NCBI GenBank assembly: GCA_020184695.1
Contig: JAANOX010000134.1
Span: forward strand, 62,001-126,000
DNA length: 64,000 nucleotides
Direction of reading: 5' to 3'
DNA from: Histomonas meleagridis 2922-C6/04-290x
Taxonomy: Eukaryota > Protista > Parabasalia
In this document: piece by piece, positions 1,230 through 45,060 of the stretch
Numbering within the stretch: the stretch's first letter is position 1
How the letters are laid out: each line of letters begins with the position of its first letter
The notes under the pieces: generated by a model
Databases searched by the model: none
What the model saw: the letters and a program-made list of their open reading frames with translations, nothing else
Told to the model about the DNA's origin: nothing
Made by a program: the position numbers and the translations under genes

Positions 1230-3047
1230 ATGATTACCACCTTAATAACCCACGCGTTTACTACTATTTGTGCTTTTAATTTCTTCCGCACAATTAACTC
1301 TACACAGAAACAACTCAACAAATTCTTATTTTTATCAACATGTAAAAGCAAACCAAATAATATCTCAATATATGAGAGAAGATCTTGCGCTCTTTCTTCT
1401 TTCTTGTATGATACTATTGATAATTTTGTTCTTTATCTCTCAGGCATATTCAATCTTCTTTTTTCATCTTCTATAAGTTCTTTTCGTAACCTAAAACCAA
1501 TGAAAGCTCATGAGCTTCATACAGGAATCAGTTGTTTTAAAATATTTTCGTCAATTCGTGTATTATCATTTTCTGATTATTATAAACAAAAAGACTCATT
1601 TTGTTGTTTCTATTTATCTTCGTGGCTCTGTTGTCTCTTCTTTTTCATTTCCAATCGATATCTTACAGTAATTTTTTCTGTTTTCAAAAGATATTTTTTA
1701 AACATAAAATTTGACTTTAAAAAAGTTTTAAAGCAAAAAAATTCCAAAACAGTTCTGTTTCCATTTCTTTTTCTTTTGTTTTTCACCAACACATTCCAAA
1801 TTTATTTCAGTGGAAACAATACACTTATAATATACAACGAAAGCGATTTTGCAAATGAAAATTCTAGTTCAATTATTTGTGTTATCATATATGCAAATTT
1901 GCCAATTAGTTCTGGAGAATTCAGTGAATGGCCAAAACTGCAGTATGTTTACATCGGAAATTTAGTTACATCAATTGGAGGTTCTGCTTTTAGTGGTTGC
2001 AGTAGTTTGGAAACTGTTTTGTTTGGCGAAAACGTAAAAGAAATTGGGGGTTCTGCATTTGCAAATTGCATTAAATTAGCAAATGTTACAATTCCTTCGT
2101 TGGTTACATCAATTGGAATTTCTGCTTTTAGTGGTTGCAGTAGTTTGGAAACTGTTTTGATTGGCGAAAACGTAAAAGAAATTGGGGGTTCTGCATTTGC
2201 AAATTGCATTAAATTGGCAAATGTTACAGTTCCTTCTTCAGTTACATCAATTGGAGGTTATGCTTTTTTCAATTGCTCCAATTTATATAATGTTATCATC
2301 GGTGAGAACGTAAAAGAGATTGGGGGTTCTGCATTTGCTTGTTGTGTAATGCTAAAGTGCATTTACTTTTATGGAGTGCAAGAACCAAACGTTGAAAATA
2401 GTGCTTTCATTAATGTTACGGCTACACAAGTAATGGTATTGAGTGAATATAAAGATAAATGTTTTGGAACTTTAGCTGTTTGCATTGATACAACAGTTGC
2501 AGGCTGCGCGCCGATGCCGACGCTTCCATTTGCGCCGTCGAACACATTCTCTAGTTCGAACACGTTCGCTGCTTCACTTCGCGGCGATATTTCGCAGACA
2601 TTTTCGTTTACATTGACAGTTACTTTGTCTGTTTCATATTCGCTGACGTACTCTGCGCTTGGCACGCAAACGCTTTCGTATTATTTGAGTAATTCGATGA
2701 TAACTTATGTTGAAACAAATTTCATATACTACAGTTACACAGTCATTGTATATTCGACATATTATAGCTATTACTCGAACTTCTTCACGTATGTGTATCT
2801 GAGTCCAAGTGATGCATCGGGCGGAATGACAACTGCGGCGCTGATCGGAATAATCTGCGGCGCCGTCGCATTCGTTTTGATTGTCGTCGCAGCTGTTACG
2901 TTTTTGGTGAAAAGTAATAACAGAAAGGAAAAGTCGAGCGTGAAGCTGCAGTTTAAGGAGACAACGACGTCAACGACAAAGCAGTACGACGATGTCGACA
3001 GCATAGTGGAAGAGCTCGCAAAAGAAGACGAAGACAATTGGATATGA
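1230..3047 (+). CDS. BspA-like (TpLRR) leucine-rich-repeat surface protein with C-terminal TM; true start uncertain (signal-like stretch near 1760)
   Basis: Repeats VTSIGGSAFSGCSSLETV / VKEIGGSAFANCIKLANVTIP, S/T-rich stalk, TM AALIGIICGAVAFVLIVVAAVTFLV, acidic tail EDEDNWI. Confidence 0.85.
   Translation: MITTLITHAFTTICAFNFFRTINSTQKQLNKFLFLSTCKSKPNNISIYERRSCALSSFLYDTIDNFVLYLSGIFNLLFSSSISSFRNLKPMKAHELHTGISCFKIFSSIRVLSFSDYYKQKDSFCCFYLSSWLCCLFFFISNRYLTVIFSVFKRYFLNIKFDFKKVLKQKNSKTVLFPFLFLLFFTNTFQIYFSGNNTLIIYNESDFANENSSSIICVIIYANLPISSGEFSEWPKLQYVYIGNLVTSIGGSAFSGCSSLETVLFGENVKEIGGSAFANCIKLANVTIPSLVTSIGISAFSGCSSLETVLIGENVKEIGGSAFANCIKLANVTVPSSVTSIGGYAFFNCSNLYNVIIGENVKEIGGSAFACCVMLKCIYFYGVQEPNVENSAFINVTATQVMVLSEYKDKCFGTLAVCIDTTVAGCAPMPTLPFAPSNTFSSSNTFAASLRGDISQTFSFTLTVTLSVSYSLTYSALGTQTLSYYLSNSMITYVETNFIYYSYTVIVYSTYYSYYSNFFTYVYLSPSDASGGMTTAALIGIICGAVAFVLIVVAAVTFLVKSNNRKEKSSVKLQFKETTTSTTKQYDDVDSIVEELAKEDEDNWI
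1965..2240 (+). repeat. Two near-identical 138-bp (46-aa, two-LRR) tandem units in the BspA gene, with a third diverged unit following
   Basis: gttacatcaattgga recurs at 1965, 2103 and 2241. Confidence 0.9.
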
Positions 3048-5399: not shown

Positions 5400-5680
5400 G
5401 CTTGTTATTAATTGAATAATCCATTTTTTATAATCATTTCCAGATGCATACATTGGTGCATGTTATTAATTTTTTGAATCATTTCCAAATATTATTTCGT
5501 ATACGAAATTATTCAAATAAACTTCAGATAAAATGAATATCTTTAGCACTAATATCAATTCCCTTTTCAAAAGGTAACTTAATTTCTACATTATTAATAG
5601 AAGTTGAACACATAAGTACTGTTATAAATTTGGATGAACATAATCAAAATTGTATTTTTGAATAAAATTTTTAAACTTAG
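5400..5680 (-). pseudogene. Decayed ankyrin-repeat fragment with degenerate codon/17-nt insert array
   Basis: Minus strand reads TVLMCSTSINNVEIKLPFEKGIDISAKD (from 5622), then 13/GAA/17/CGT/16/GGA/17/ATA-ACA and a frameshifted APMYASGN. Confidence 0.65.
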
Positions 5681-5820
5681 AAAATCCCCAACATCCTCAC
5701 AAGGACTTCACAGAATTATCTTGTTTCGGCTAAGAAAATATTATATGGGATTTATCAAAAAGTGTGAGTTCACCAAGTGAAGTGGTAGTTTTGAATTAAT
5801 AATTGCTAATAAACAATTTC

Positions 5821-8248
5821 ATGAGCACCAAAGATTTACCTGGGAAAAAAGGGCATTTGAATACTCTATTATCCATTGAACAAATTATTTTCGGCTTGAA
5901 AGAAGAAAATATTGAATCTTCAATTCTATCAATTCTTCAATTATTTGATAGCCACGTTACAAATTCTTTTTTCAGCGTGATTAGTCAACTCTCATATGCA
6001 TTTTATATTTCTCAATCACATGATGCTAATTTACTTTTTCATTTTTTCAAAGAAATTGAAAAAAAGTTAACTGGAATCACCACGTTTTTTGTTGATTTTA
6101 TTCTAAATCTTAACTCCAAGAGCGAAGAGTTAAATTATCTTTTAAGCGAGATGATAAACAATAATTTAATTGACGCAAAATCCATCAAAAACAAAACATT
6201 ATATTTTTCACATATCAAAAAGACATATGAAATCAATCCAACTACAGCAGATCAAAACTTTATTAATAACATTTCCGTATTTGAAAAAGATAATTGGGAA
6301 CTTCATAAGCAATTAATTAAGGAAGGAGTTAATCCAAATGAAATTGCAAAAGTCATTCGAAATGATGAAATCGAAAAACTTCAAGAAATATCATCACAAA
6401 GTAATTTCGATTTTAATCAAACAATAGAACCATCAATTTATGAAAGATGTTCATTTATTAACAAAGAAGATGTTACATTAATTGATTATGCAGCATTTTT
6501 TTCTGCTGTTAAATGTTTCAAATATTTACTTATGAATGGATCTAAAGTAAATAACACAGGCAAATATGCAATTGCTGGTGGAAATCTTGAAATTATTCAT
6601 TTATGTGAACAAAAGAATTTATCTTTTAATGAGGCACATAATTTCGCAATCGAATTTCATCGAAATGATATCTTTAGATATCTTTATGAAAATAAAATCA
6701 TTGAAATCAAAGATTTATGTGAAATTGGGAATTTATGTCTTAAGAATTATAATTTTGAGGTTTTATCATTTTTAGAAAATGAAGGAATGGAAATAAGAGA
6801 ATCAATGATTAATAATGCCGCAAAATGTGGAAATTATTTCCTTACAATTCATTTTCTTGAGAAAAATAAAGTTCCGGAAGAAATTTTAATCTCTTCTTCG
6901 ATTTCTGGTAATGTTGATCTTGTTAAATATCTTATTGATAAAGGAATTGATATAAATCGAAAAGATATAAATTTTGTTTGCTTAAAAATTGTTTCTTTGT
7001 TTTTGGGTTTGTTGGAAAAATTTGGAATTTATATAAATTGTTTAGAACTTCTCTTTTATGGGTAGTACAGAAAAATAACATCGACGTTGTTAAGTTCCTT
7101 CTTGAACAAGAAGGAATTGATATTAATGCAAAAAATGTTTTGTGATTTTTGTTAAAGTATTTTTCAAATTTTCGATGTTGATATTTTTTGTTTGGAATTA
7201 ACGCATTTATGTCTGCAGCTAACAATGGAAATTGTGAAATTATACAATTACTTCTTGATAAAGGAACAATTAATATAAATGAAAAAGATGTTAATTTCAC
7301 ATATATAATTTTTGATTAATTAATTTTTTGGAATTTTTTTGTTTTGCTTTGTACAGCTTTTATGCGTGCATGTCAATTTGGTAATGTTCAAGTTGTAGAA
7401 TTACTTCTTAAACAAGATGGAATTGATATTAATATTAAAACTATTTTAAATCTTTATTTAATATCAAATTTAATTATTTGATATTTATATGAATTATTTG
7501 GTTTTTCTTTGTGGTATTTAGGTCATCACTTTCTTATGCAGCACAAAATGGTCATGTTGATATTATTAAGTTAATTCTTAATCATGGAGGAATTGATCTT
7601 AATGCGAAAAATATAAATATAATAATTTTAAAGTTTATTATAAAGTTTTGATGGGATTTATTATGCGTTATATTGGACAGCACTAATGTTAGCAACTCGA
7701 TATAATCAAATTGAAGTAGTAAAATTACTTCTTTTACAAAAGGGAATTGATGTTAATACTAAAACTAATGTTTTATTCTCTTTTTTAAGATTTAAAAATA
7801 TTATTCGGAGTTTAAACAAATCGTTTTGGACTGCACTTATGTGGGCAGCTAGAAATGGGTTTAGTGAAATTGTTAAAGAATTAATTGGTCAAAATGGAAT
7901 TGATATCAATCAACGTAATATATATTTTATTTATTTGATTTTTATATGAATAATTTGATGTTTGAAATCAACATTCCAAGTTTTGCATAATTCATATGAA
8001 ACAGCACTTATTGTAGCAGCAAATTCAAATCAAGTAGAAATTGTGAAGTTATTACTTGAAAATAAAGAAATTGATATAAAGGCCAAAAATGTTTTTTAAT
8101 TTTAATTAATGTTTTAATGACATTTTTTGTGTTGGAAAATATTATTTAGAATTTCTACAAATTTTGTGAAACAGCTTATGATATCGCAAAAGAAAATTAC
8201 AACCATGATATTATGAAATTACTTCAAGAATATGATAAAAGTATATAA
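5821..8248 (+). CDS. DUF3447-type ankyrin-repeat protein interrupted by 28 inserts of 17-18 nt; predicted 649 aa after excision
   Basis: N-terminal domain (IRNDEIEKLQ...LIDYAAFFSAVKCFKYL), then ankyrin cores starting 7047, 7200, 7353, 7523, 7677, 7830, 8001, 8171; 2428 nt minus 478 nt of inserts = 1950 nt, in frame to TAA 8246-8248. Confidence 0.8.
6967..8167 (+). other. Eight clusters of 17-nt inserts separated by single codons (ankyrin locus 1)
   Basis: D-to-T spacer lengths 80,63,63,80,64,63,81,80 nt = 12 coding nt + 3 or 4 inserts. Confidence 0.9.
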
Positions 8249-8383
8249 TAAAAGTCTATTTTAGACAAATATTTTCTGAACATATTTTAAGAATTAAATC
8301 TTTTGATCTGTTGTGAAGTGGTTAATTCAAAAAGTGAGAAATGTCATTTTTTGTTTTTGAAAAGTTTATTATAACGTCTCCCA

Positions 8384-9517
8384 GTGATTAATTACATGGA
8401 AAGTCTACCCGCTGATCCAGATTTAATTGAATCATTTTCACTTGAATTAATCATACCAGAAGATCCTGAACATTGCTTTGAAGATGTTGATAATTGCCCT
8501 CAACGAAGATGGGCTGTTCCTGGAGAAGATTTATTTCTCTTCATTAAAACGTCACCATCAGCTTTCCATATAAATTGCCTCTCCTTCAATGTGAGAATAG
8601 TTGGTACTCACCTTTCATCAAGAAGGAGTACATTTGGCCATATGTCAACTTCATTAATGACAAATCTCGATCAAATTAAAACAATTGTTAACCATTCTTT
8701 CCCACCAATGACACCATTTCGTACAGACTCAGATTGTATCATTTATCCATTAAAAATCCTTATTCCACCCACAATGCGCACACAATTTAAAATCGAAGCA
8801 TACATACCAGGACGAGCAAAGTCGATCCAATCTCACACGTTACAAATTTTTTCACCATTTAATGTGTTCTTCAGGTCAGAACCCACTACAGGCTCACTTA
8901 TACTCCAATTTAACATTGAGTGTGACTTACGTATGAATCTTCCTGTTGAACTTGAGTCTACTGATGTTGAAATTGAAGCAGAAAATCCACAAATTCTCCA
9001 TGACTTTCAATCCAACATAAAGATCACAAATCCAAGCAACATTAAATGCACCGTCAAAAACGAGATGAGTTTGTCATCAATATTTATATTCGTTCCACTC
9101 ACGTCAATCGGCGCGTCAATGCTGCCGCATTTGATAACGAACTTTTCCATCAACTGGAACGTTAAGAGCCTATCGTTCAAATCCGTTTGGACGACAGACA
9201 TTGAGAAGGAGACGTTTGGGATTTCAATACTAATACCGCCGATAACCGCAAAGGTGAATCAAACAACAACGGTGCCTTTTAGGTTAACAAATGCAAATGA
9301 CGTGGCTAAAAGTATTGACTTGGTGTTTGAGGGTGGATATATTCAGCCAGTTGCTAAAAGAGTACACGTTCCAAATATTGAACCGAATTCTTCAACAACA
9401 ATTGATATTTCGTTGTTGCCTTTGGCTGTAGGGTATCATCCACTAAAGTTCTGGGCAGAAAATGCGCAGAAAAGAATAGAGCCAATGTTCCCGACTTATG
9501 TGTTTGTAAAGGAATAA
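8384..9517 (+). CDS. Hypothetical protein, beta-rich C-terminal (Ig-like?) region
   Basis: 377-aa ORF with coding-like composition; no firm family match. Confidence 0.6.
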   Translation: MINYMESLPADPDLIESFSLELIIPEDPEHCFEDVDNCPQRRWAVPGEDLFLFIKTSPSAFHINCLSFNVRIVGTHLSSRRSTFGHMSTSLMTNLDQIKTIVNHSFPPMTPFRTDSDCIIYPLKILIPPTMRTQFKIEAYIPGRAKSIQSHTLQIFSPFNVFFRSEPTTGSLILQFNIECDLRMNLPVELESTDVEIEAENPQILHDFQSNIKITNPSNIKCTVKNEMSLSSIFIFVPLTSIGASMLPHLITNFSINWNVKSLSFKSVWTTDIEKETFGISILIPPITAKVNQTTTVPFRLTNANDVAKSIDLVFEGGYIQPVAKRVHVPNIEPNSSTTIDISLLPLAVGYHPLKFWAENAQKRIEPMFPTYVFVKE

Positions 9518-12260: not shown

Positions 12261-15200
12261 ATGAAATCTGGAAGAACATCAAAAAATGAAATTTCAACCA
12301 AATTTAAGGATATAATATCAAAATTTATATCTATTGAAGGAATTATTTTAAATTTGGATAAAGAGAATATTGAAGAATCAGTACAATCAATATATGATTT
12401 ATTAGGCATAAATCATCTATATTCAGTTTTTTTGATTGTATGTAAATTAGCATATTCAGCATTTGTTTCACGTATGAAAAATTTTAATATTTATATTACT
12501 TTTCTCCAAACATTAGAAAAAAAATATGAGAAAATATGTAACTATCAAATTATAAATATATTTACAAAATTTCTTCTTTCTATAAATTCACAAGAATCAA
12601 ATTATCTTTTAGAAAAACTTTTTGAAAATAAATTAATTGATAATAGCGTGTTATCGAAAAAATGTTGTTTATATTTTATGCAATATTTGAAAATAGAAAA
12701 AATTAATGAATTAAAAAATATAACTAAAACTTTTTCGCATATCACAAAAGATTTTAAAGAACTTTCACAACTAAAAAGTAAATTTATAGAAAATTATGCT
12801 GAACTTTCGGCAAATGATTATGAACTTCATAAACAATTAGTTAAAGAAGGACATAATCCAAATGAAATTGCAAAAATAATTCGAAATGACGAAATAGAAA
12901 AACTTAAAGAAATATCATCACAAGAAGAATTTAATTTTAATCAAATGATTGAACCATCACTTTATGAAAGATGTTCATTTGTTAATCAATATAAAGTTTC
13001 GTTAATTGATTATGCAGCATTTTTTGGATCAATAAAATGTTTTAAATATTTACTTATTAATGGTTCTTCAATAGATAACACAGGTAAATATGCAATTGCA
13101 GGCGGAAACATTGAAATAATTCATTTATGTAAACAAAACCATTCTTCATTTTATTGGTCATATGAAGCAGCGATTAAGTTGCACCAAAATGAATCATTCA
13201 AATATCTTTATGAAAATAATATTGCTAAAACCATAAATTTAAATATTTTATTGAAAAAATGCATTACAAACAACTCATATGAACTTTTTTATTATCTGAT
13301 AGAAAAAGAAGGAATGAATTTGGATCCTTTTATTAATGAATTATCATTAACAGGAAATTTATTTATCATAAAATGTCTTCTTAAAGATTATCAATTGACA
13401 AATGATATATTCCTTTCATGTGCAAACTCTGGGAATTTTGAAATTGTTGATTACATAATAAAAAGTAATAAAATTGGTAATTTAATGAATAAAATTTATT
13501 TTAATAATAATATGTTTCAAAATAACATTTGGAAATTCTTTAAATCATTTTCTACAGCATTTATTTCAGCATCCTCAAAAGGTCATCTTGAAGTTGTAAA
13601 ATTATTTATCGAGCAAAAATTTGATATCAATGCGAAAGATCTTTCTTTGTGTTAAATAAAATTTATTACAATAATTTTATATATCAAAATAATATTTAAA
13701 AATTATTAATATTTTTTGATACAGCACTAATGCATGCATCCAAAAATGGTCATACTGATATAGTTAAAATACTTCTTGAACAAAAGAAAATCGATATTAA
13801 TGCTAAAGGTAATTGTTTCAATAATTTAATTATGTTTCAAAATAATATTTAAAAATTATTAATATTTTTTGATACAGCACTAATGCATGCATCTGAATAT
13901 GGTCATACTGATATAGTTAAAATACTTCTTGAACAAAATAAAATTGATATTAATGCTAAAAATATTTATTTTCATGATTTATTGTGATTTTAACATAATA
14001 TTTGGAAATTATTTAAATTATTTGAAACAGCACTTATTTATGCATCTATATATGGTTATACAGAAATAGTTAAATTACTTCTTGAACAAAAAGGAATTGA
14101 CATTAATGCTAAAAGTATTTATTTGTTTTGTATAAAATTTATTTTAATAATTTTATATTTCAAAATAATAATTGGAAATTATTTAAATTATTTCAAACAG
14201 CACTTATTTGTGCATCTAGTAGAGGTTATACAGAAATCGTTAAATTACTTCTTGAACAAAATAAAATTGATATTAATGTTAAAGATATTTATTCATTTTG
14301 TATAAAATTTATTTAAATATTTTGAAATTTCAAAATAATATTTGGAAATTATTTAAATTATTTAAAACAGCACTTATGTATGCATCTAAATATTGTTATA
14401 TAGAAATAGTTAAATTACTTCTTGAACAAAATAAAATTGATATTAATGCAAAAGATATTTATTCATTTTGTATAAAATTTATTTAAATATTTTGAAATTT
14501 CAAAATAATGTTTGGAAATTATTTAAATTATTTTGTGCAGCATTTATGATGGCATCTGAAAAAGGTCATATAGAAATAGTTAAATTAATTCTTGAACAAA
14601 ATAAAATTGATATTAATGACAAAGATATTTATTTGTTTTATTAAAAGTTTATATTAATAATTTAATGTTTCAAAATAATATTTGGAAATTATTTAAATTT
14701 TTTTGGACAGCGCTTTATCATGCAACTTACTATAATCATATACAAATTGTTAAGTTATTTCTTAAACAAGAAGGAATTGATTTTAATATTAAAGATGCTT
14801 TTTTGTTTTACATAAAGTTTAAATAAAAAACTTTGGATTTCAAAATAATCCTTGGAAATTGCATAAATTATTTGAAACAGTACTTATGATTGCTTGTAAA
14901 AATCATTATACAGAAATAGTTCATTTACTTCTTGAACAAGAAGGAATTGATATTAATGCTAAAGATACTTATTTGTTTTATATAAAATTTATTTTAATAA
15001 TTTTATATTTCAATATTATATTTGGAAATTATTTATATTATTTAAAACAGCACTTAGTTATGCATCTAGTAGAGGTTATACAGAAATAGTTCAATTACTT
15101 CTTGAACAAGAAGGAATTGATATTAATGCGGAAAATATTTGTTTATTTTATTTAATATTTATTTAAAATATTTTAAAATGATATTTGGAAATTCTTCAAA

Positions 15201-15287
15201 ATATTTTGAACAGTACTTATGATAGCATCATTTTCTAGAAAAGGTTTTGATGATGTATCTAAATTAATTCATGAAAAAGATAAATGA
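12261..15287 (+). CDS. DUF3447-type ankyrin-repeat protein interrupted by at least 37 17-nt inserts; last junction degenerate
   Basis: N-terminal domain paralogous to the 5821 gene; ankyrin cores start 13554, 13721, 13874, 14027, 14197, 14367, 14537, 14707, 14877, 15047, 15210; final TGA 15285-15287. Confidence 0.8.
13494..15209 (+). other. Eleven clusters of 17-nt inserts separated by single codons (ankyrin locus 2); repeat unit mostly 170 bp
   Basis: For example 14287-14366: ATTTATTCATTTTGTAT-AAA-ATTTATTTAAATATTTT-GAA-ATTTCAAAATAATATTT-GGA-AATTATTTAAATTATTT-AAA-ACA. Confidence 0.92.
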
Positions 15288-15688
15288 ATCTAAATCAATC
15301 TTTTTTATCTTTCATTTTTCTCCTTTACTTATACAAATTACAAAAGAAAAAGATTTGAATAATCGAGCTTTTTATATCTACAATAAATTCAATATTTTGG
15401 GTTTTGATGCAAAATTTAATAAAAAAATTATTGCTACAAAAAATGTGATAACTACAATTTATTCATACAGTAATTTGATAAATTTATAATATTTAAACGA
15501 TCATAATAAAATTTTATTGTTTTCATATTTCATATTTGTCATCATTTCACATCACATTACATATTTAATGATAAACCATTGAAGACGAAAAACTGGAAAA
15601 TTGAGTACAATATTTGTGCAAAATTTGGAACGCAAAAGAAATAAAGCAGACGATAGCAGTTGGATAAAGTACTGAATTACAGTTGGGG

Positions 15689-44599: not shown

Positions 44600-45060
44600 T
44601 CAATCTTTGAGTTGATTTTGATTATTAGCAATATGCGCTTCATTTCTATTTCTTATTGAAGATGAAGATTTGATATTTGTAGAAGAGGAATCTGAATTAG
44701 AATTTTCGTTTGTACTTTTTTCAAGGAGTAAATTTATTATTTCTGTGAAACCTTTCTTTTGTGCAATTTGAAGTGCTGTCAAATATTATTAAAACATATT
44801 CCAAATTATTAAAACATATTATAAATTATCAAAACATATTCCAAATTATTCAAATGAATATTTTTTGCATTAACATCAATTCCTTCTTTATCTAAAAGTA
44901 ATTTTACTATTTCTATATTATTATTTTTAACTGCTATATGAAGTGCTGTTTCAAATTATTAAAACATATTCCAAGTTATTAAAACATATATAAAATTATT
45001 AAAACATATTCCAAATTATTAAAACATATTTCTAAAATCAAGTAAAGTATTCAATTTCAT
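44600..45060 (-). CDS. Small two-ankyrin-repeat protein interrupted by 8 inserts; predicted 107 aa after excision
   Basis: ATG 45060 about 20 nt after an Inr-like TCACTTT; 461 nt minus 137 nt = 324 nt; product [58 protein letters not shown]... Confidence 0.65.
44783..45030 (-). repeat. Two clusters of 20-nt tandem units (ATATGTTTTAATAATTT + variable codon)
   Basis: On the plus strand aaattattaaaacatatt recurs every 20 nt at 44783-44859 and 44953-45030. Confidence 0.92.

Follow-up and report, generated by a model that had tools for sequence, protein, structure and literature searches.

The DNA analysed here (the window) is a stretch of 64,000 nucleotides (nt) from contig JAANOX010000134.1 of the parabasalid Histomonas meleagridis. 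Its G+C content is 29.8%, and the published genome of this species has 28.7% (PMC8529796). On the + strand, between an ATG at 5821 and a TAA at 8246-8248, lies a gene without annotation that combines a DUF3447 domain with ankyrin repeats, a composition typical of one large family of parabasalid proteins. Past position 6966 its reading frame is broken by a series of short T-rich inserts, which are present in contigs from DNA sequencing and missing from contigs assembled from RNA runs.

An interrupted DUF3447-ankyrin gene

The gene begins with an uninterrupted open reading frame (ORF) of 382 codons (5821-6966), which encodes the N-terminal region, DUF3447 and the first ankyrin repeats, ends with ...DINRKD, and matches Pfam DUF3447 (E=4.5e-10) together with Ank_2/Ank_4. 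The frame then breaks, the first stop in the unprocessed frame being TAG at 7063-7065. Downstream of 6966 there are seven ankyrin cores of 31-32 residues each and a shorter last repeat, in shifting frames, and the coding blocks are parted by eight spacers (6967-8167) of 77, 57, 60, 77, 61, 57, 78 and 77 nt. Within these spacers we distinguish 28 inserts, of which 26 have 17 nt and two have 18 nt, from 22 kept codons, which mostly stand singly between neighbouring inserts. Excision of the inserts in silico gives a protein of 649 residues with no internal stop, in which the cores are linked by two or three residues. This is the arrangement found in uninterrupted relatives, where three-residue x-x-G linkers precede W/C-T-A/P-L (for example DQG-WTAL in Tritrichomonas foetus), and the excised gene has the features of the DUF3447-ankyrin family.

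All parts of the gene lie on the + strand. In spacer 1 (6967-7043, spliced loop KDKWGRTSL) four inserts, 6967-6983, 6987-7003, 7007-7023 and 7027-7043, surround the kept codons AAA 6984 (K), TGG 7004 (W) and GGA 7024 (G), and ankyrin core 1 follows at 7044-7136 (RTSLLWVVQKNNIDVVKFLLEQEGIDINAKN). Spacer 2 (7137-7193, KNKDGINAF) has three inserts, 7137-7153, 7157-7173 and 7177-7193, with AAA 7154 (K) and GAT 7174 (D) kept; its slot 4 is empty, the loop Gly running straight into core 2 (7194-7289). Spacer 3 (7290-7349, KDNFGCTAF) is made up of inserts 7290-7306, 7310-7326 and 7333-7349, and keeps AAT 7307 (N), TTT 7327 (F) and GGA 7330 (G); here the F and G codons are adjacent and slot 3 is empty. 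After core 3 (7350-7442), spacer 4 (7443-7519, KTNDGRSSL) has four inserts, 7443-7459, 7463-7479, 7483-7499 and 7503-7519, around AAT 7460 (N), GAT 7480 (D) and GGT 7500 (G), and leads into core 4 (7520-7612). Spacer 5 (7613-7673, KNKDGWTAL), with inserts 7613-7629 and 7633-7649 and an 18-nt insert at 7656-7673, keeps AAA 7630 (K), GAT 7650 (D) and GGG 7653 (G), the slot between its adjacent D and G codons being empty. Core 5 (7674-7769) is followed by spacer 6 (7770-7826, KTNKGWTAL), in which inserts 7770-7786, 7790-7806 and 7810-7826 enclose AAG 7787 (K) and GGA 7807 (G). Between core 6 (7827-7919) and core 7 (7998-8090), spacer 7 (7920-7997, RNDDQETAL) holds inserts 7920-7936, 7940-7956 and 7960-7976 and an 18-nt insert at 7980-7997, with GAT 7937 (D), GAT 7957 (D) and CAA 7977 (Q) kept. 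Spacer 8 (8091-8167, KNNCRETAY), with inserts 8091-8107, 8111-8127, 8131-8147 and 8151-8167 around AAT 8108 (N), TGT 8128 (C) and AGA 8148 (R), precedes the last coding block (8168-8248; ETAYDIAKENYNHDIMKLLQEYDKSI), which carries the stop codon.

The position of the 18-nt insert within spacers 5 and 7 was set by consensus, the RNA data described below fixing only the totals removed from these spacers. As parsed, both 18-nt inserts occupy the last slot of their own spacer, and both end in ATAT, not ATTT. An automatic parser recovered 27 of the 28 inserts at this locus, but at the ends of genes and in N-terminal regions it also called inserts falsely; the hand-checked parse was used for this gene, and elsewhere only inserts between repeat cores were taken.

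The codons that the parse keeps are peculiar to its register. K, N, D or G codons, which fill 17 of the 22 slots at offset 0, fill at most 10 of 22 at each of the 19 other offsets obtained by sliding the slots 1-19 nt. Gly codons number five at offset 0 and at most two at any shifted offset, and stops, none of which occurs among the 22 kept codons, are present at 8 of the 19 shifted offsets. At the Gly position of the β-hairpin, five of the seven single codons are GGN (P about 1e-7 under the base composition of the window).

An earlier note on this DNA, made from the letters alone, had described the gene as a second, highly diverged ankyrin gene with a 17-nt/3-nt architecture. Its coordinates and counts, including the two inserts of 18 nt, agree with the parse of the eight spacers, and excision reproduces both its eight loop sequences and its 649-residue frame. 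It had named parses at other offsets as a rival source of consensus loops, and slid slots never match offset 0. Its counts across three loci (Gly at 16 of 20 junctions, and 80 loop codons free of stops) were checked for the present locus and, loosely, for locus 2 only.

The 382-residue N-terminal block has no identical or near-identical match in the protein database, the top match having 53% identity, implying that the gene is missing from public proteomes. Among the matches to this block there is no full-length protein derived from a transcript. Spacer 6 is free of stops, and the two cores on either side of it are consequently read through, with the unprocessed spacer, as an ORF of 87 residues (about 7686-7949, +). 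A gene caller could take this stretch for a normal exon; the 87-residue sequence has no match in a database of 5.8 billion protein clusters.

Evidence for removal of the inserts from RNA

Nine public sequencing runs are listed for the stretch, eight of them with a real share of the sampled words. Four, labelled 'DNA?', belong to a 2021 study, and in the best two of these, X1 and X2, the share of the sampled words of the insert-containing form is 0.94 and 0.90; in the four labelled 'RNA?', from a 2023 study, the share of sampled words is 0.47-0.65. Contigs of three RNA runs and of one DNA run (X1) were placed on 5600-8500. Placement at 90% likeness admitted thousands of paralogue contigs, and only pieces with 0 mismatches are relied on. 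In the intergenic bin 5697-5793 the depth is 0-1.2 in the RNA runs versus 1642 in the DNA run, implying that the 'RNA?' runs are largely RNA libraries. At 6279-6763 and 7055-7151 the summed contig depth rises by 3-5 orders of magnitude in RNA and DNA runs alike, with many variant letters, because these conserved DUF3447 and ankyrin segments draw in contigs from a very large family of paralogues.

The contigs of the DNA run (X1 records 6-8) are colinear with the window. The RNA runs differ. One of their contigs (X4 record 21, 450 nt) matches the genome with 0 mismatches at 7519-7613, 7674-7769, 7827-7919 and 7998-8090, that is, at cores 4 to 7. The stretches between these pieces are 60, 57 and 78 letters long in the genome; in the contig they are replaced by 8, 6 and 9 letters of its own, so that 52, 51 and 69 nt have been removed, equal to 17+17+18, 3x17 and 3x17+18. 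The eight letters in spacer 5 correspond to the nine kept there, of which the first, an A, also matches 7613. Past 8090, the predicted left edge of spacer 8, the genome match ends and six more letters of the contig follow. Had the kept letters adjoined one of the flanks in the genome, the matching pieces would have run on into them; one intron per spacer is thereby excluded. The spacers with 18-nt variants are among those processed in this contig, and an insert length of 18 nt is thus tolerated, at least in the context of spacers 5 and 7.

The ends of the matching pieces tell the same story. All ten that can be checked (6967, 7193, 7289, 7499, 7519, 7613/7674, 7769/7827, 7919/7998 and 8090) lie as the parse predicts. 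Pieces halt at the core edge at 7289, 7769/7827, 7919/7998 and 8090, and overrun by one letter into the spacer where the predicted codon letter equals that of the genome, namely at 6967 and 7613 (A of AAA), at 7193 and 7499 (T of GAT) and at 7519 (T of GGT). The first coding block is covered with 0 mismatches by RNA contigs at 5818-6222, 5846-6314 and 6686-6967; the last of these, X4 record 19, departs from the genome just past the point where the first A of the K codon still matches. The joint that starts at 6967 is found in five RNA contigs and no DNA contig among the joints listed. Pieces of X4 record 20 and X5 record 25 begin at 7193, where a joint between ...GAT and GGA should place them, and RNA pieces with this left end stop at 7289, the edge of spacer 3, giving joints at both sides of core 2. 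The last coding block is represented by X5 record 28 (8161-8364).

At spacer 4, the piece of X4 record 21 that begins at 7519 has lost the insert 7503-7519. X5 record 27 begins at 7499 and keeps both GGT and this insert, and its sequence before that point departs from the genome. It thus apparently retains one insert with the preceding one gone, which suggests that the inserts are removed one by one. The paralogues point in the same direction as the gene itself. Among the contig continuations listed past a paralogue core end (loose ends after 7133-7140), most of those in the RNA runs go on with loop codons, for example D-N-Y-G-K-T-A-L, whereas the best-supported continuation in the DNA run is insert sequence; this suggests that processing is family-wide.

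We conclude from X4 record 21 and the other RNA-run contigs, set against the colinear DNA run, that the inserts are removed at the RNA level with exact joining of their flanks, and that the gene is real and transcribed and encodes a DUF3447-ankyrin protein of 649 residues.

Features of the inserts and possible routes of removal

On the sense strand the inserts consist of 59% T, 27% A, 9% G and 5% C, a T-rich strand asymmetry that fits their recognition as RNA. Position 1 is A or G in 25 of the 28, and T occupies positions 2, 3 and 4 in 27, 23 and 22, respectively. Four nucleotides before the end there is again A or G (20 of 28), and each of the last three positions is T in 24-25 of 28. The inserts share an opening RTTT and a closing (R)TTT (R being A or G), and the exon letter after an insert is usually a purine. 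A consensus, RTTT-R-WWT-N-WW-TT-R-TTT, is common to this gene, to a second interrupted ankyrin gene in the window (locus 2) and to a metagenomic contig (L001), both described below. The mean pairwise identity of the inserts is 0.53, compared with 0.43 for shuffled sequences and 0.63 in the younger locus 2. Their length is thus held although their sequences have diverged almost to saturation. Since the reading frame alone would constrain only the total per spacer, such a constraint on each insert implies that inserts are removed individually, each as a unit.

The earlier note had called the inserts mostly unrelated in sequence. This is true of their drifted interiors, but the common RTTT and (R)TTT ends, the T-richness and the avoidance of AG described next do relate them. 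It had also proposed a length-measuring excision under selection; the excision is borne out by RNA contigs that lack the inserts, and the constancy of length by 17 nt in 26 of 28, while the measuring of length is something we infer. The contrary outcome that it had named, complementary DNA (cDNA) ending at TAG 7063-7065 with the inserts retained, is not what the RNA contigs present, which lack the inserts and keep the codons.

Within the inserts of this gene AG occurs once, against 7.0 +/- 2.1 expected from column-preserving shuffles among inserts (P=0.002), and GA occurs at its expected frequency (9 observed, 9.6 expected). AG is likewise scarce in L001 (2 observed, 5.0 expected) and in locus 2 (1 observed, 3.9 expected), and the 83 inserts pooled from the three loci have 4 against 17.6 expected, numbers that are small and in which the locus 2 inserts are not mutually independent. 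When a further metagenomic contig, L004, is included, 6 of 99 inserts (6%) contain AG, compared with 47 of 193 matched RTTT...TTT 17-mers elsewhere in the window (24%; Fisher P=9e-5). A deficit of AG that is specific to the order of the two letters is the expected product of selection against competing 3' splice sites, and it is our main reason for leaning towards a spliceosome-derived reaction.

RNA structure as a recognition signal was considered and rejected for lack of a common fold. Among the eight spacers, folded with 15-nt flanks, no shared or unusually stable fold is found; their shapes differ, and the z-scores for spacers 1-8 are +0.55, +0.19, +1.72, -1.79, -0.13, -2.16, -0.81 and -1.28.

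How, then, might 28 inserts be taken out of a single transcript? That they are excised from RNA in the manner of introns we consider highly probable. That the excision is spliceosome-derived, with the 3' cut set by distance, we hold to be evenly balanced between true and false. In the DNA, the β-hairpin loop codons of the last eight repeats are split by T-rich sequences of 17 nt, rarely 18. Our reading is that these leave the RNA individually and that the lone codons between them are joined; inserts that lie only 3 nt apart must be removed in succession. A spliceosome-derived reaction would act here at the lower limit of intron length, a limit at which only one or two lengths are allowed in other lineages that have arrived there by convergence (PMC10245619). 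It would recognise R-U and an adjoining U tract as its 5' site. An AG would play no part in placing its 3' cut, which would lie at a set distance, either 17 nt away from the 5' site or 7-9 nt beyond a central A. An internal AG would then compete as a 3' site, and hence be selected against. Recognition probably combines weak sequence cues with length.

Several observations weigh against this reading. At the 3' end, AG and AC are each found in none of the 28 inserts, the last two letters being TT in 21 and something else in seven; the 5' end is GT in 13 of 28, AT in 11 and other in four. The parabasalid branch motif CTAA/TAAC is in none of the 28. An A is present somewhere at positions 9-11 in 19 of 26 inserts, but no single insert position at this locus has more than about 54% A, so that no fixed branch point is evident. 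We know of no example of a spliceosome handling tandem 3-nt exons. As to the RNA itself, the evidence consists of assembler contigs, not reads, the run type 'RNA?' is a software guess, and the joints rest on letter counts and piece ends, not on the identity of the junction letters. The far side of the joint at 6967 is placed, oddly, at 7098 and not at 7044. The same RNA runs also contain unprocessed contigs of similar depth (X3 records 15 and 16; X5 records 24 and 26), one of which, X5 record 26, runs across spacer 3 at 7260-7379; either processing is incomplete, or DNA or other transcripts are present in the libraries. X3 record 16, with a length of 2752 nt and a depth of 55, runs colinear with the genome over 7404-8500 and beyond, inserts included, and passes the 3' end of the ankyrin gene to reach the next one, at 8384-9517, for which the transglutaminase C-terminal Ig-like domain is a weak match. 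This contig could be an unprocessed read-through, an antisense transcript or DNA carry-over.

The absence from the inserts of an AG or AC 3' end, a branch motif and a fixed A favours a non-spliceosomal route, which we regard as possible without thinking it probable. An endonuclease might cut before a purine beside a U tract, at sites 17 nt apart, with joining by an RNA ligase of the transfer RNA (tRNA) or HAC1/XBP1-like kind, or the deletion might be directed by guide RNAs; in either case the inserts would constitute a novel class of intervening sequence. The two cut sites are indeed alike, falling usually between T and R at the 5' side and between TTT and R at the 3' side, the length is fixed whatever the interior sequence, and exons of 3 nt seem too small for spliceosomal exon or intron definition. 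There is, however, no shared fold or bulge-helix-bulge-like structure in the spacers (z from +1.7 to -2.2), a U-tract nuclease offers no obvious reason for the avoidance of AG specifically when GA is normal, and the R-U starts, together with the U-rich short introns of Trichomonas, fit a spliceosomal origin.

A fuller version of a new class is doubtful. It would have the inserts handled by length-measuring non-spliceosomal machinery and confined to the target-binding ankyrin loops of an expanded family in the Histomonas lineage. If this were true, an insert left in place would shift the frame, and where removal is incomplete the protein would be cut short after a varying number of repeats, which would give the parasite a post-transcriptional way to vary or regulate its ankyrin family.

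It is very unlikely that the insert-free RNA contigs come from an insert-free DNA copy of the gene, whether a retrocopy or a strain polymorphism in the isolate of the RNA study. The RNA and DNA runs are from different studies, and contigs of one DNA run were placed, which gives such a copy some room. Nevertheless, the same RNA runs hold an insert-containing contig with 0 mismatches over 7404-8500 (X3 record 16), X5 record 27 keeps one insert, and at the loose ends after 7133-7140 RNA and DNA differ in the same way in many paralogues. The DNA runs X1 and X2, moreover, hold nearly all the words of the unprocessed form (0.94 and 0.90), and the DNA contigs listed are colinear with the window and have no such joints.

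Scarcely any credence attaches to the idea that each spacer is a single non-canonical intron, or that the gene is a decaying pseudogene whose kept codons are due to chance. Such a view would suit the early stop at 7063-7065 and the ending of relatives at about 400 residues by gene callers, and spacer lengths alone could fit other schemes. It is opposed by an RNA contig that keeps 9, 6 and 9 letters per spacer contiguous with neither flank, by consensus loop codons that appear at offset 0 only, by Gly in five of seven slot codons (P about 1e-7), and by the retention of the architecture and its Gly slot in a relative of 45-48% identity. A canonical GT...AG intron in spacer 1 was tried separately and rejected, because the only plausible pair (GTTTGC at 6976 to AG at 7044-7045, 70 nt) breaks the frame. 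Least credible of all, skipping by the ribosome of inserts that stay in the messenger RNA (mRNA), as in phage T4 gene 60 and the mitochondrial bypass elements of Magnusiomyces, would account for the insert-containing contigs in the RNA runs but not for the insert-free ones, would call for an implausible 28 successive hops, each onto a single codon, and finds no evident take-off and landing codon pairs in the flanks.

Relatives, origin and comparison with known systems

The best named relatives are proteins of H. meleagridis and Tritrichomonas foetus with 34-42% identity to the 382-residue N-terminal block, and the family includes ankyrin genes of T. foetus that have no interruptions. About 18 proteins from metagenome assemblies in ENA match the block at 40-53% identity. 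Nearly all of them are called at 380-450 residues, implying that the calls ended at the first insert. Since gene callers end such genes there, the large ankyrin family of this poultry pathogen is mis-annotated, and proteomic searches would miss the loop peptides.

Two metagenomic contigs extend far enough to be parsed; three others (L002, L003 and L006) end too soon past the first insert and were left out. L001 (48% identity) has six spacers, of which five parse cleanly as four 17-nt inserts around single codons, with Y-N-G, K-S-G, K-Y-G, K-D-G and S-D-G kept, and the fourth parses poorly. L004 (45% identity) has four spacers, and all 16 of its inserts between repeats are 17 nt long. Gly is at the same slot in both as in the present gene. 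The architecture and the Gly slot are thus conserved in a metagenomic relative of 45-48% protein identity while the inserts differ. L004 (4622-5521, - strand) and L005 (4380-5279, - strand) also carry an ORF of 299 residues with an IS1595-type DDE transposase domain, about 2.3 kilobases (kb) downstream of the interrupted ankyrin gene.

The window holds other interrupted ankyrin genes. Locus 2 (12261-15290, +) is a second DUF3447-ankyrin gene, with about 10 repeats at a period of 170 nt; its 17-nt inserts are younger and mutually similar, with a 20-nt sub-period, and the parser gives 38 of them, with loops such as K-Y-G, K-E-G and K-N-G. At about 44600-45060 (-) a small two-repeat ankyrin gene has near-identical inserts (ATATGTTTTAATAATTT) in 20-nt tandem arrays. 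It adjoins a G+C-richer gene on the + strand, starting at about 45352, that looks like alpha-tubulin. Elsewhere, at 1964-2338 (+), there is a tandem repeat of 138 nt (2 x 69) with 86% identity, whose consensus resembles a BspA-type leucine-rich repeat (...IGGSAFSGCSSLETV...).

Both locus 2 and the gene at about 44.6-45.1 kb have a tandem period of 20 nt, which suggests that the inserts originated when a unit of insert plus codon was duplicated. The inserts may have arisen by tandem duplication of such a 20-nt unit (one insert and one codon), and may then have spread with the ankyrin repeat. Later, single inserts could have been lost precisely, as introns are lost through cDNA; the cleanly empty slots in spacers 2, 3 and 5 would be typical of cDNA-mediated intron loss.

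Provided that the RNA evidence is sound, this eukaryote cuts 17-nt sequences out of the transcript of a single gene by the dozen, leaving single-codon exons between them, and the sequences lack both a 3' AG and any recognisable branch motif. If the reaction is spliceosomal, the known range of the spliceosome is extended to a 3' site set by distance, to 3-nt exons and to serial removal; if it is not, there is an RNA-processing pathway that has not yet been described. What the present locus contributes is that length is kept despite near-saturated divergence, that spacers with 18-nt variants are processed, and that the inserts specifically avoid an internal AG. The paper on the H. meleagridis genome gives at most one intron per gene (PMC8529796), and in the literature on 17-nt introns, on Histomonas and Dientamoeba introns, on non-canonical parabasalid introns and on single-codon exons we found no description of a system of this kind.

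Which known systems, then, do the inserts resemble? The type B introns of Trichomonas vaginalis and T. stableri are 23-25 nt long and U-rich, with a largely poly-T interior and 5' GT(A/T)(C/T), and parabasalid introns have the branch motif TCTAA(C) and a 3' AG (PMC12316389). These belong to the same phylum, and the 5' half of the inserts (GTTT or ATTT followed by a U tract) is similar. In contrast, the inserts lack CTAA/TAAC and a terminal AG (0 of 28), are about 6 nt shorter, and number 28 in one gene. Nor do the 28 inserts have the terminal dinucleotides of U2 or U12 spliceosomal introns, GT-AG or AT-AC.

The nonconventional introns of euglenids likewise occur in nuclear pre-mRNA, have no GT-AG borders and are removed by an unidentified mechanism, but they are variable in length and mostly far longer, and a stable stem is said to join their ends. 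The likeness lies in the missing GT-AG borders; the spacers have no such fold, and the insert length is fixed. Splicing by endonuclease and ligase, as of the tRNA bulge-helix-bulge or of the 26-nt HAC1/XBP1 intron cut by Ire1, requires that the RNA at each of the two cut sites has a defined structure. It is comparable in the shortness of the sequence removed and in ends that are not GT-AG, whereas the spacers have no shared or unusually stable structure. The internal eliminated sequences of ciliates are removed from DNA, and translational bypass elements stay in the mRNA. Both are also short AT-rich interruptions of a frame; here, however, the DNA runs keep the inserts, which are thus not absent from the DNA as eliminated sequences are from somatic DNA, and RNA contigs lack them.

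The closest likeness in length is to the minimal introns of Mikrocytos, heterotrichs and nucleomorphs, which are GT-AG introns scattered singly through many genes. They have narrow lengths, 16-17 nt in Mikrocytos mackini, 15-16 nt in heterotrich ciliates such as Stentor and 18-21 nt in chlorarachniophyte nucleomorphs, and highly conserved sequences in common (PMC10245619). The inserts are like them in being removed from RNA, in their extreme shortness, in having one or two lengths (17 nt, rarely 18) and in their varying interior. A length of one or two values within 15-21 nt is thus shared, and conserved sequence with GT-AG ends is not: the inserts end in AG in 0 of 28 and start with GT in 13 of 28, stand in tandem 3 nt apart, and occur in ankyrin loops only. 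The inserts work like minimal introns of fixed length, yet they fail the defining tests of every class with which we have compared them. We conclude that they are intervening sequences of minimal fixed length that are removed from RNA, with a substantial chance that they represent a new class.

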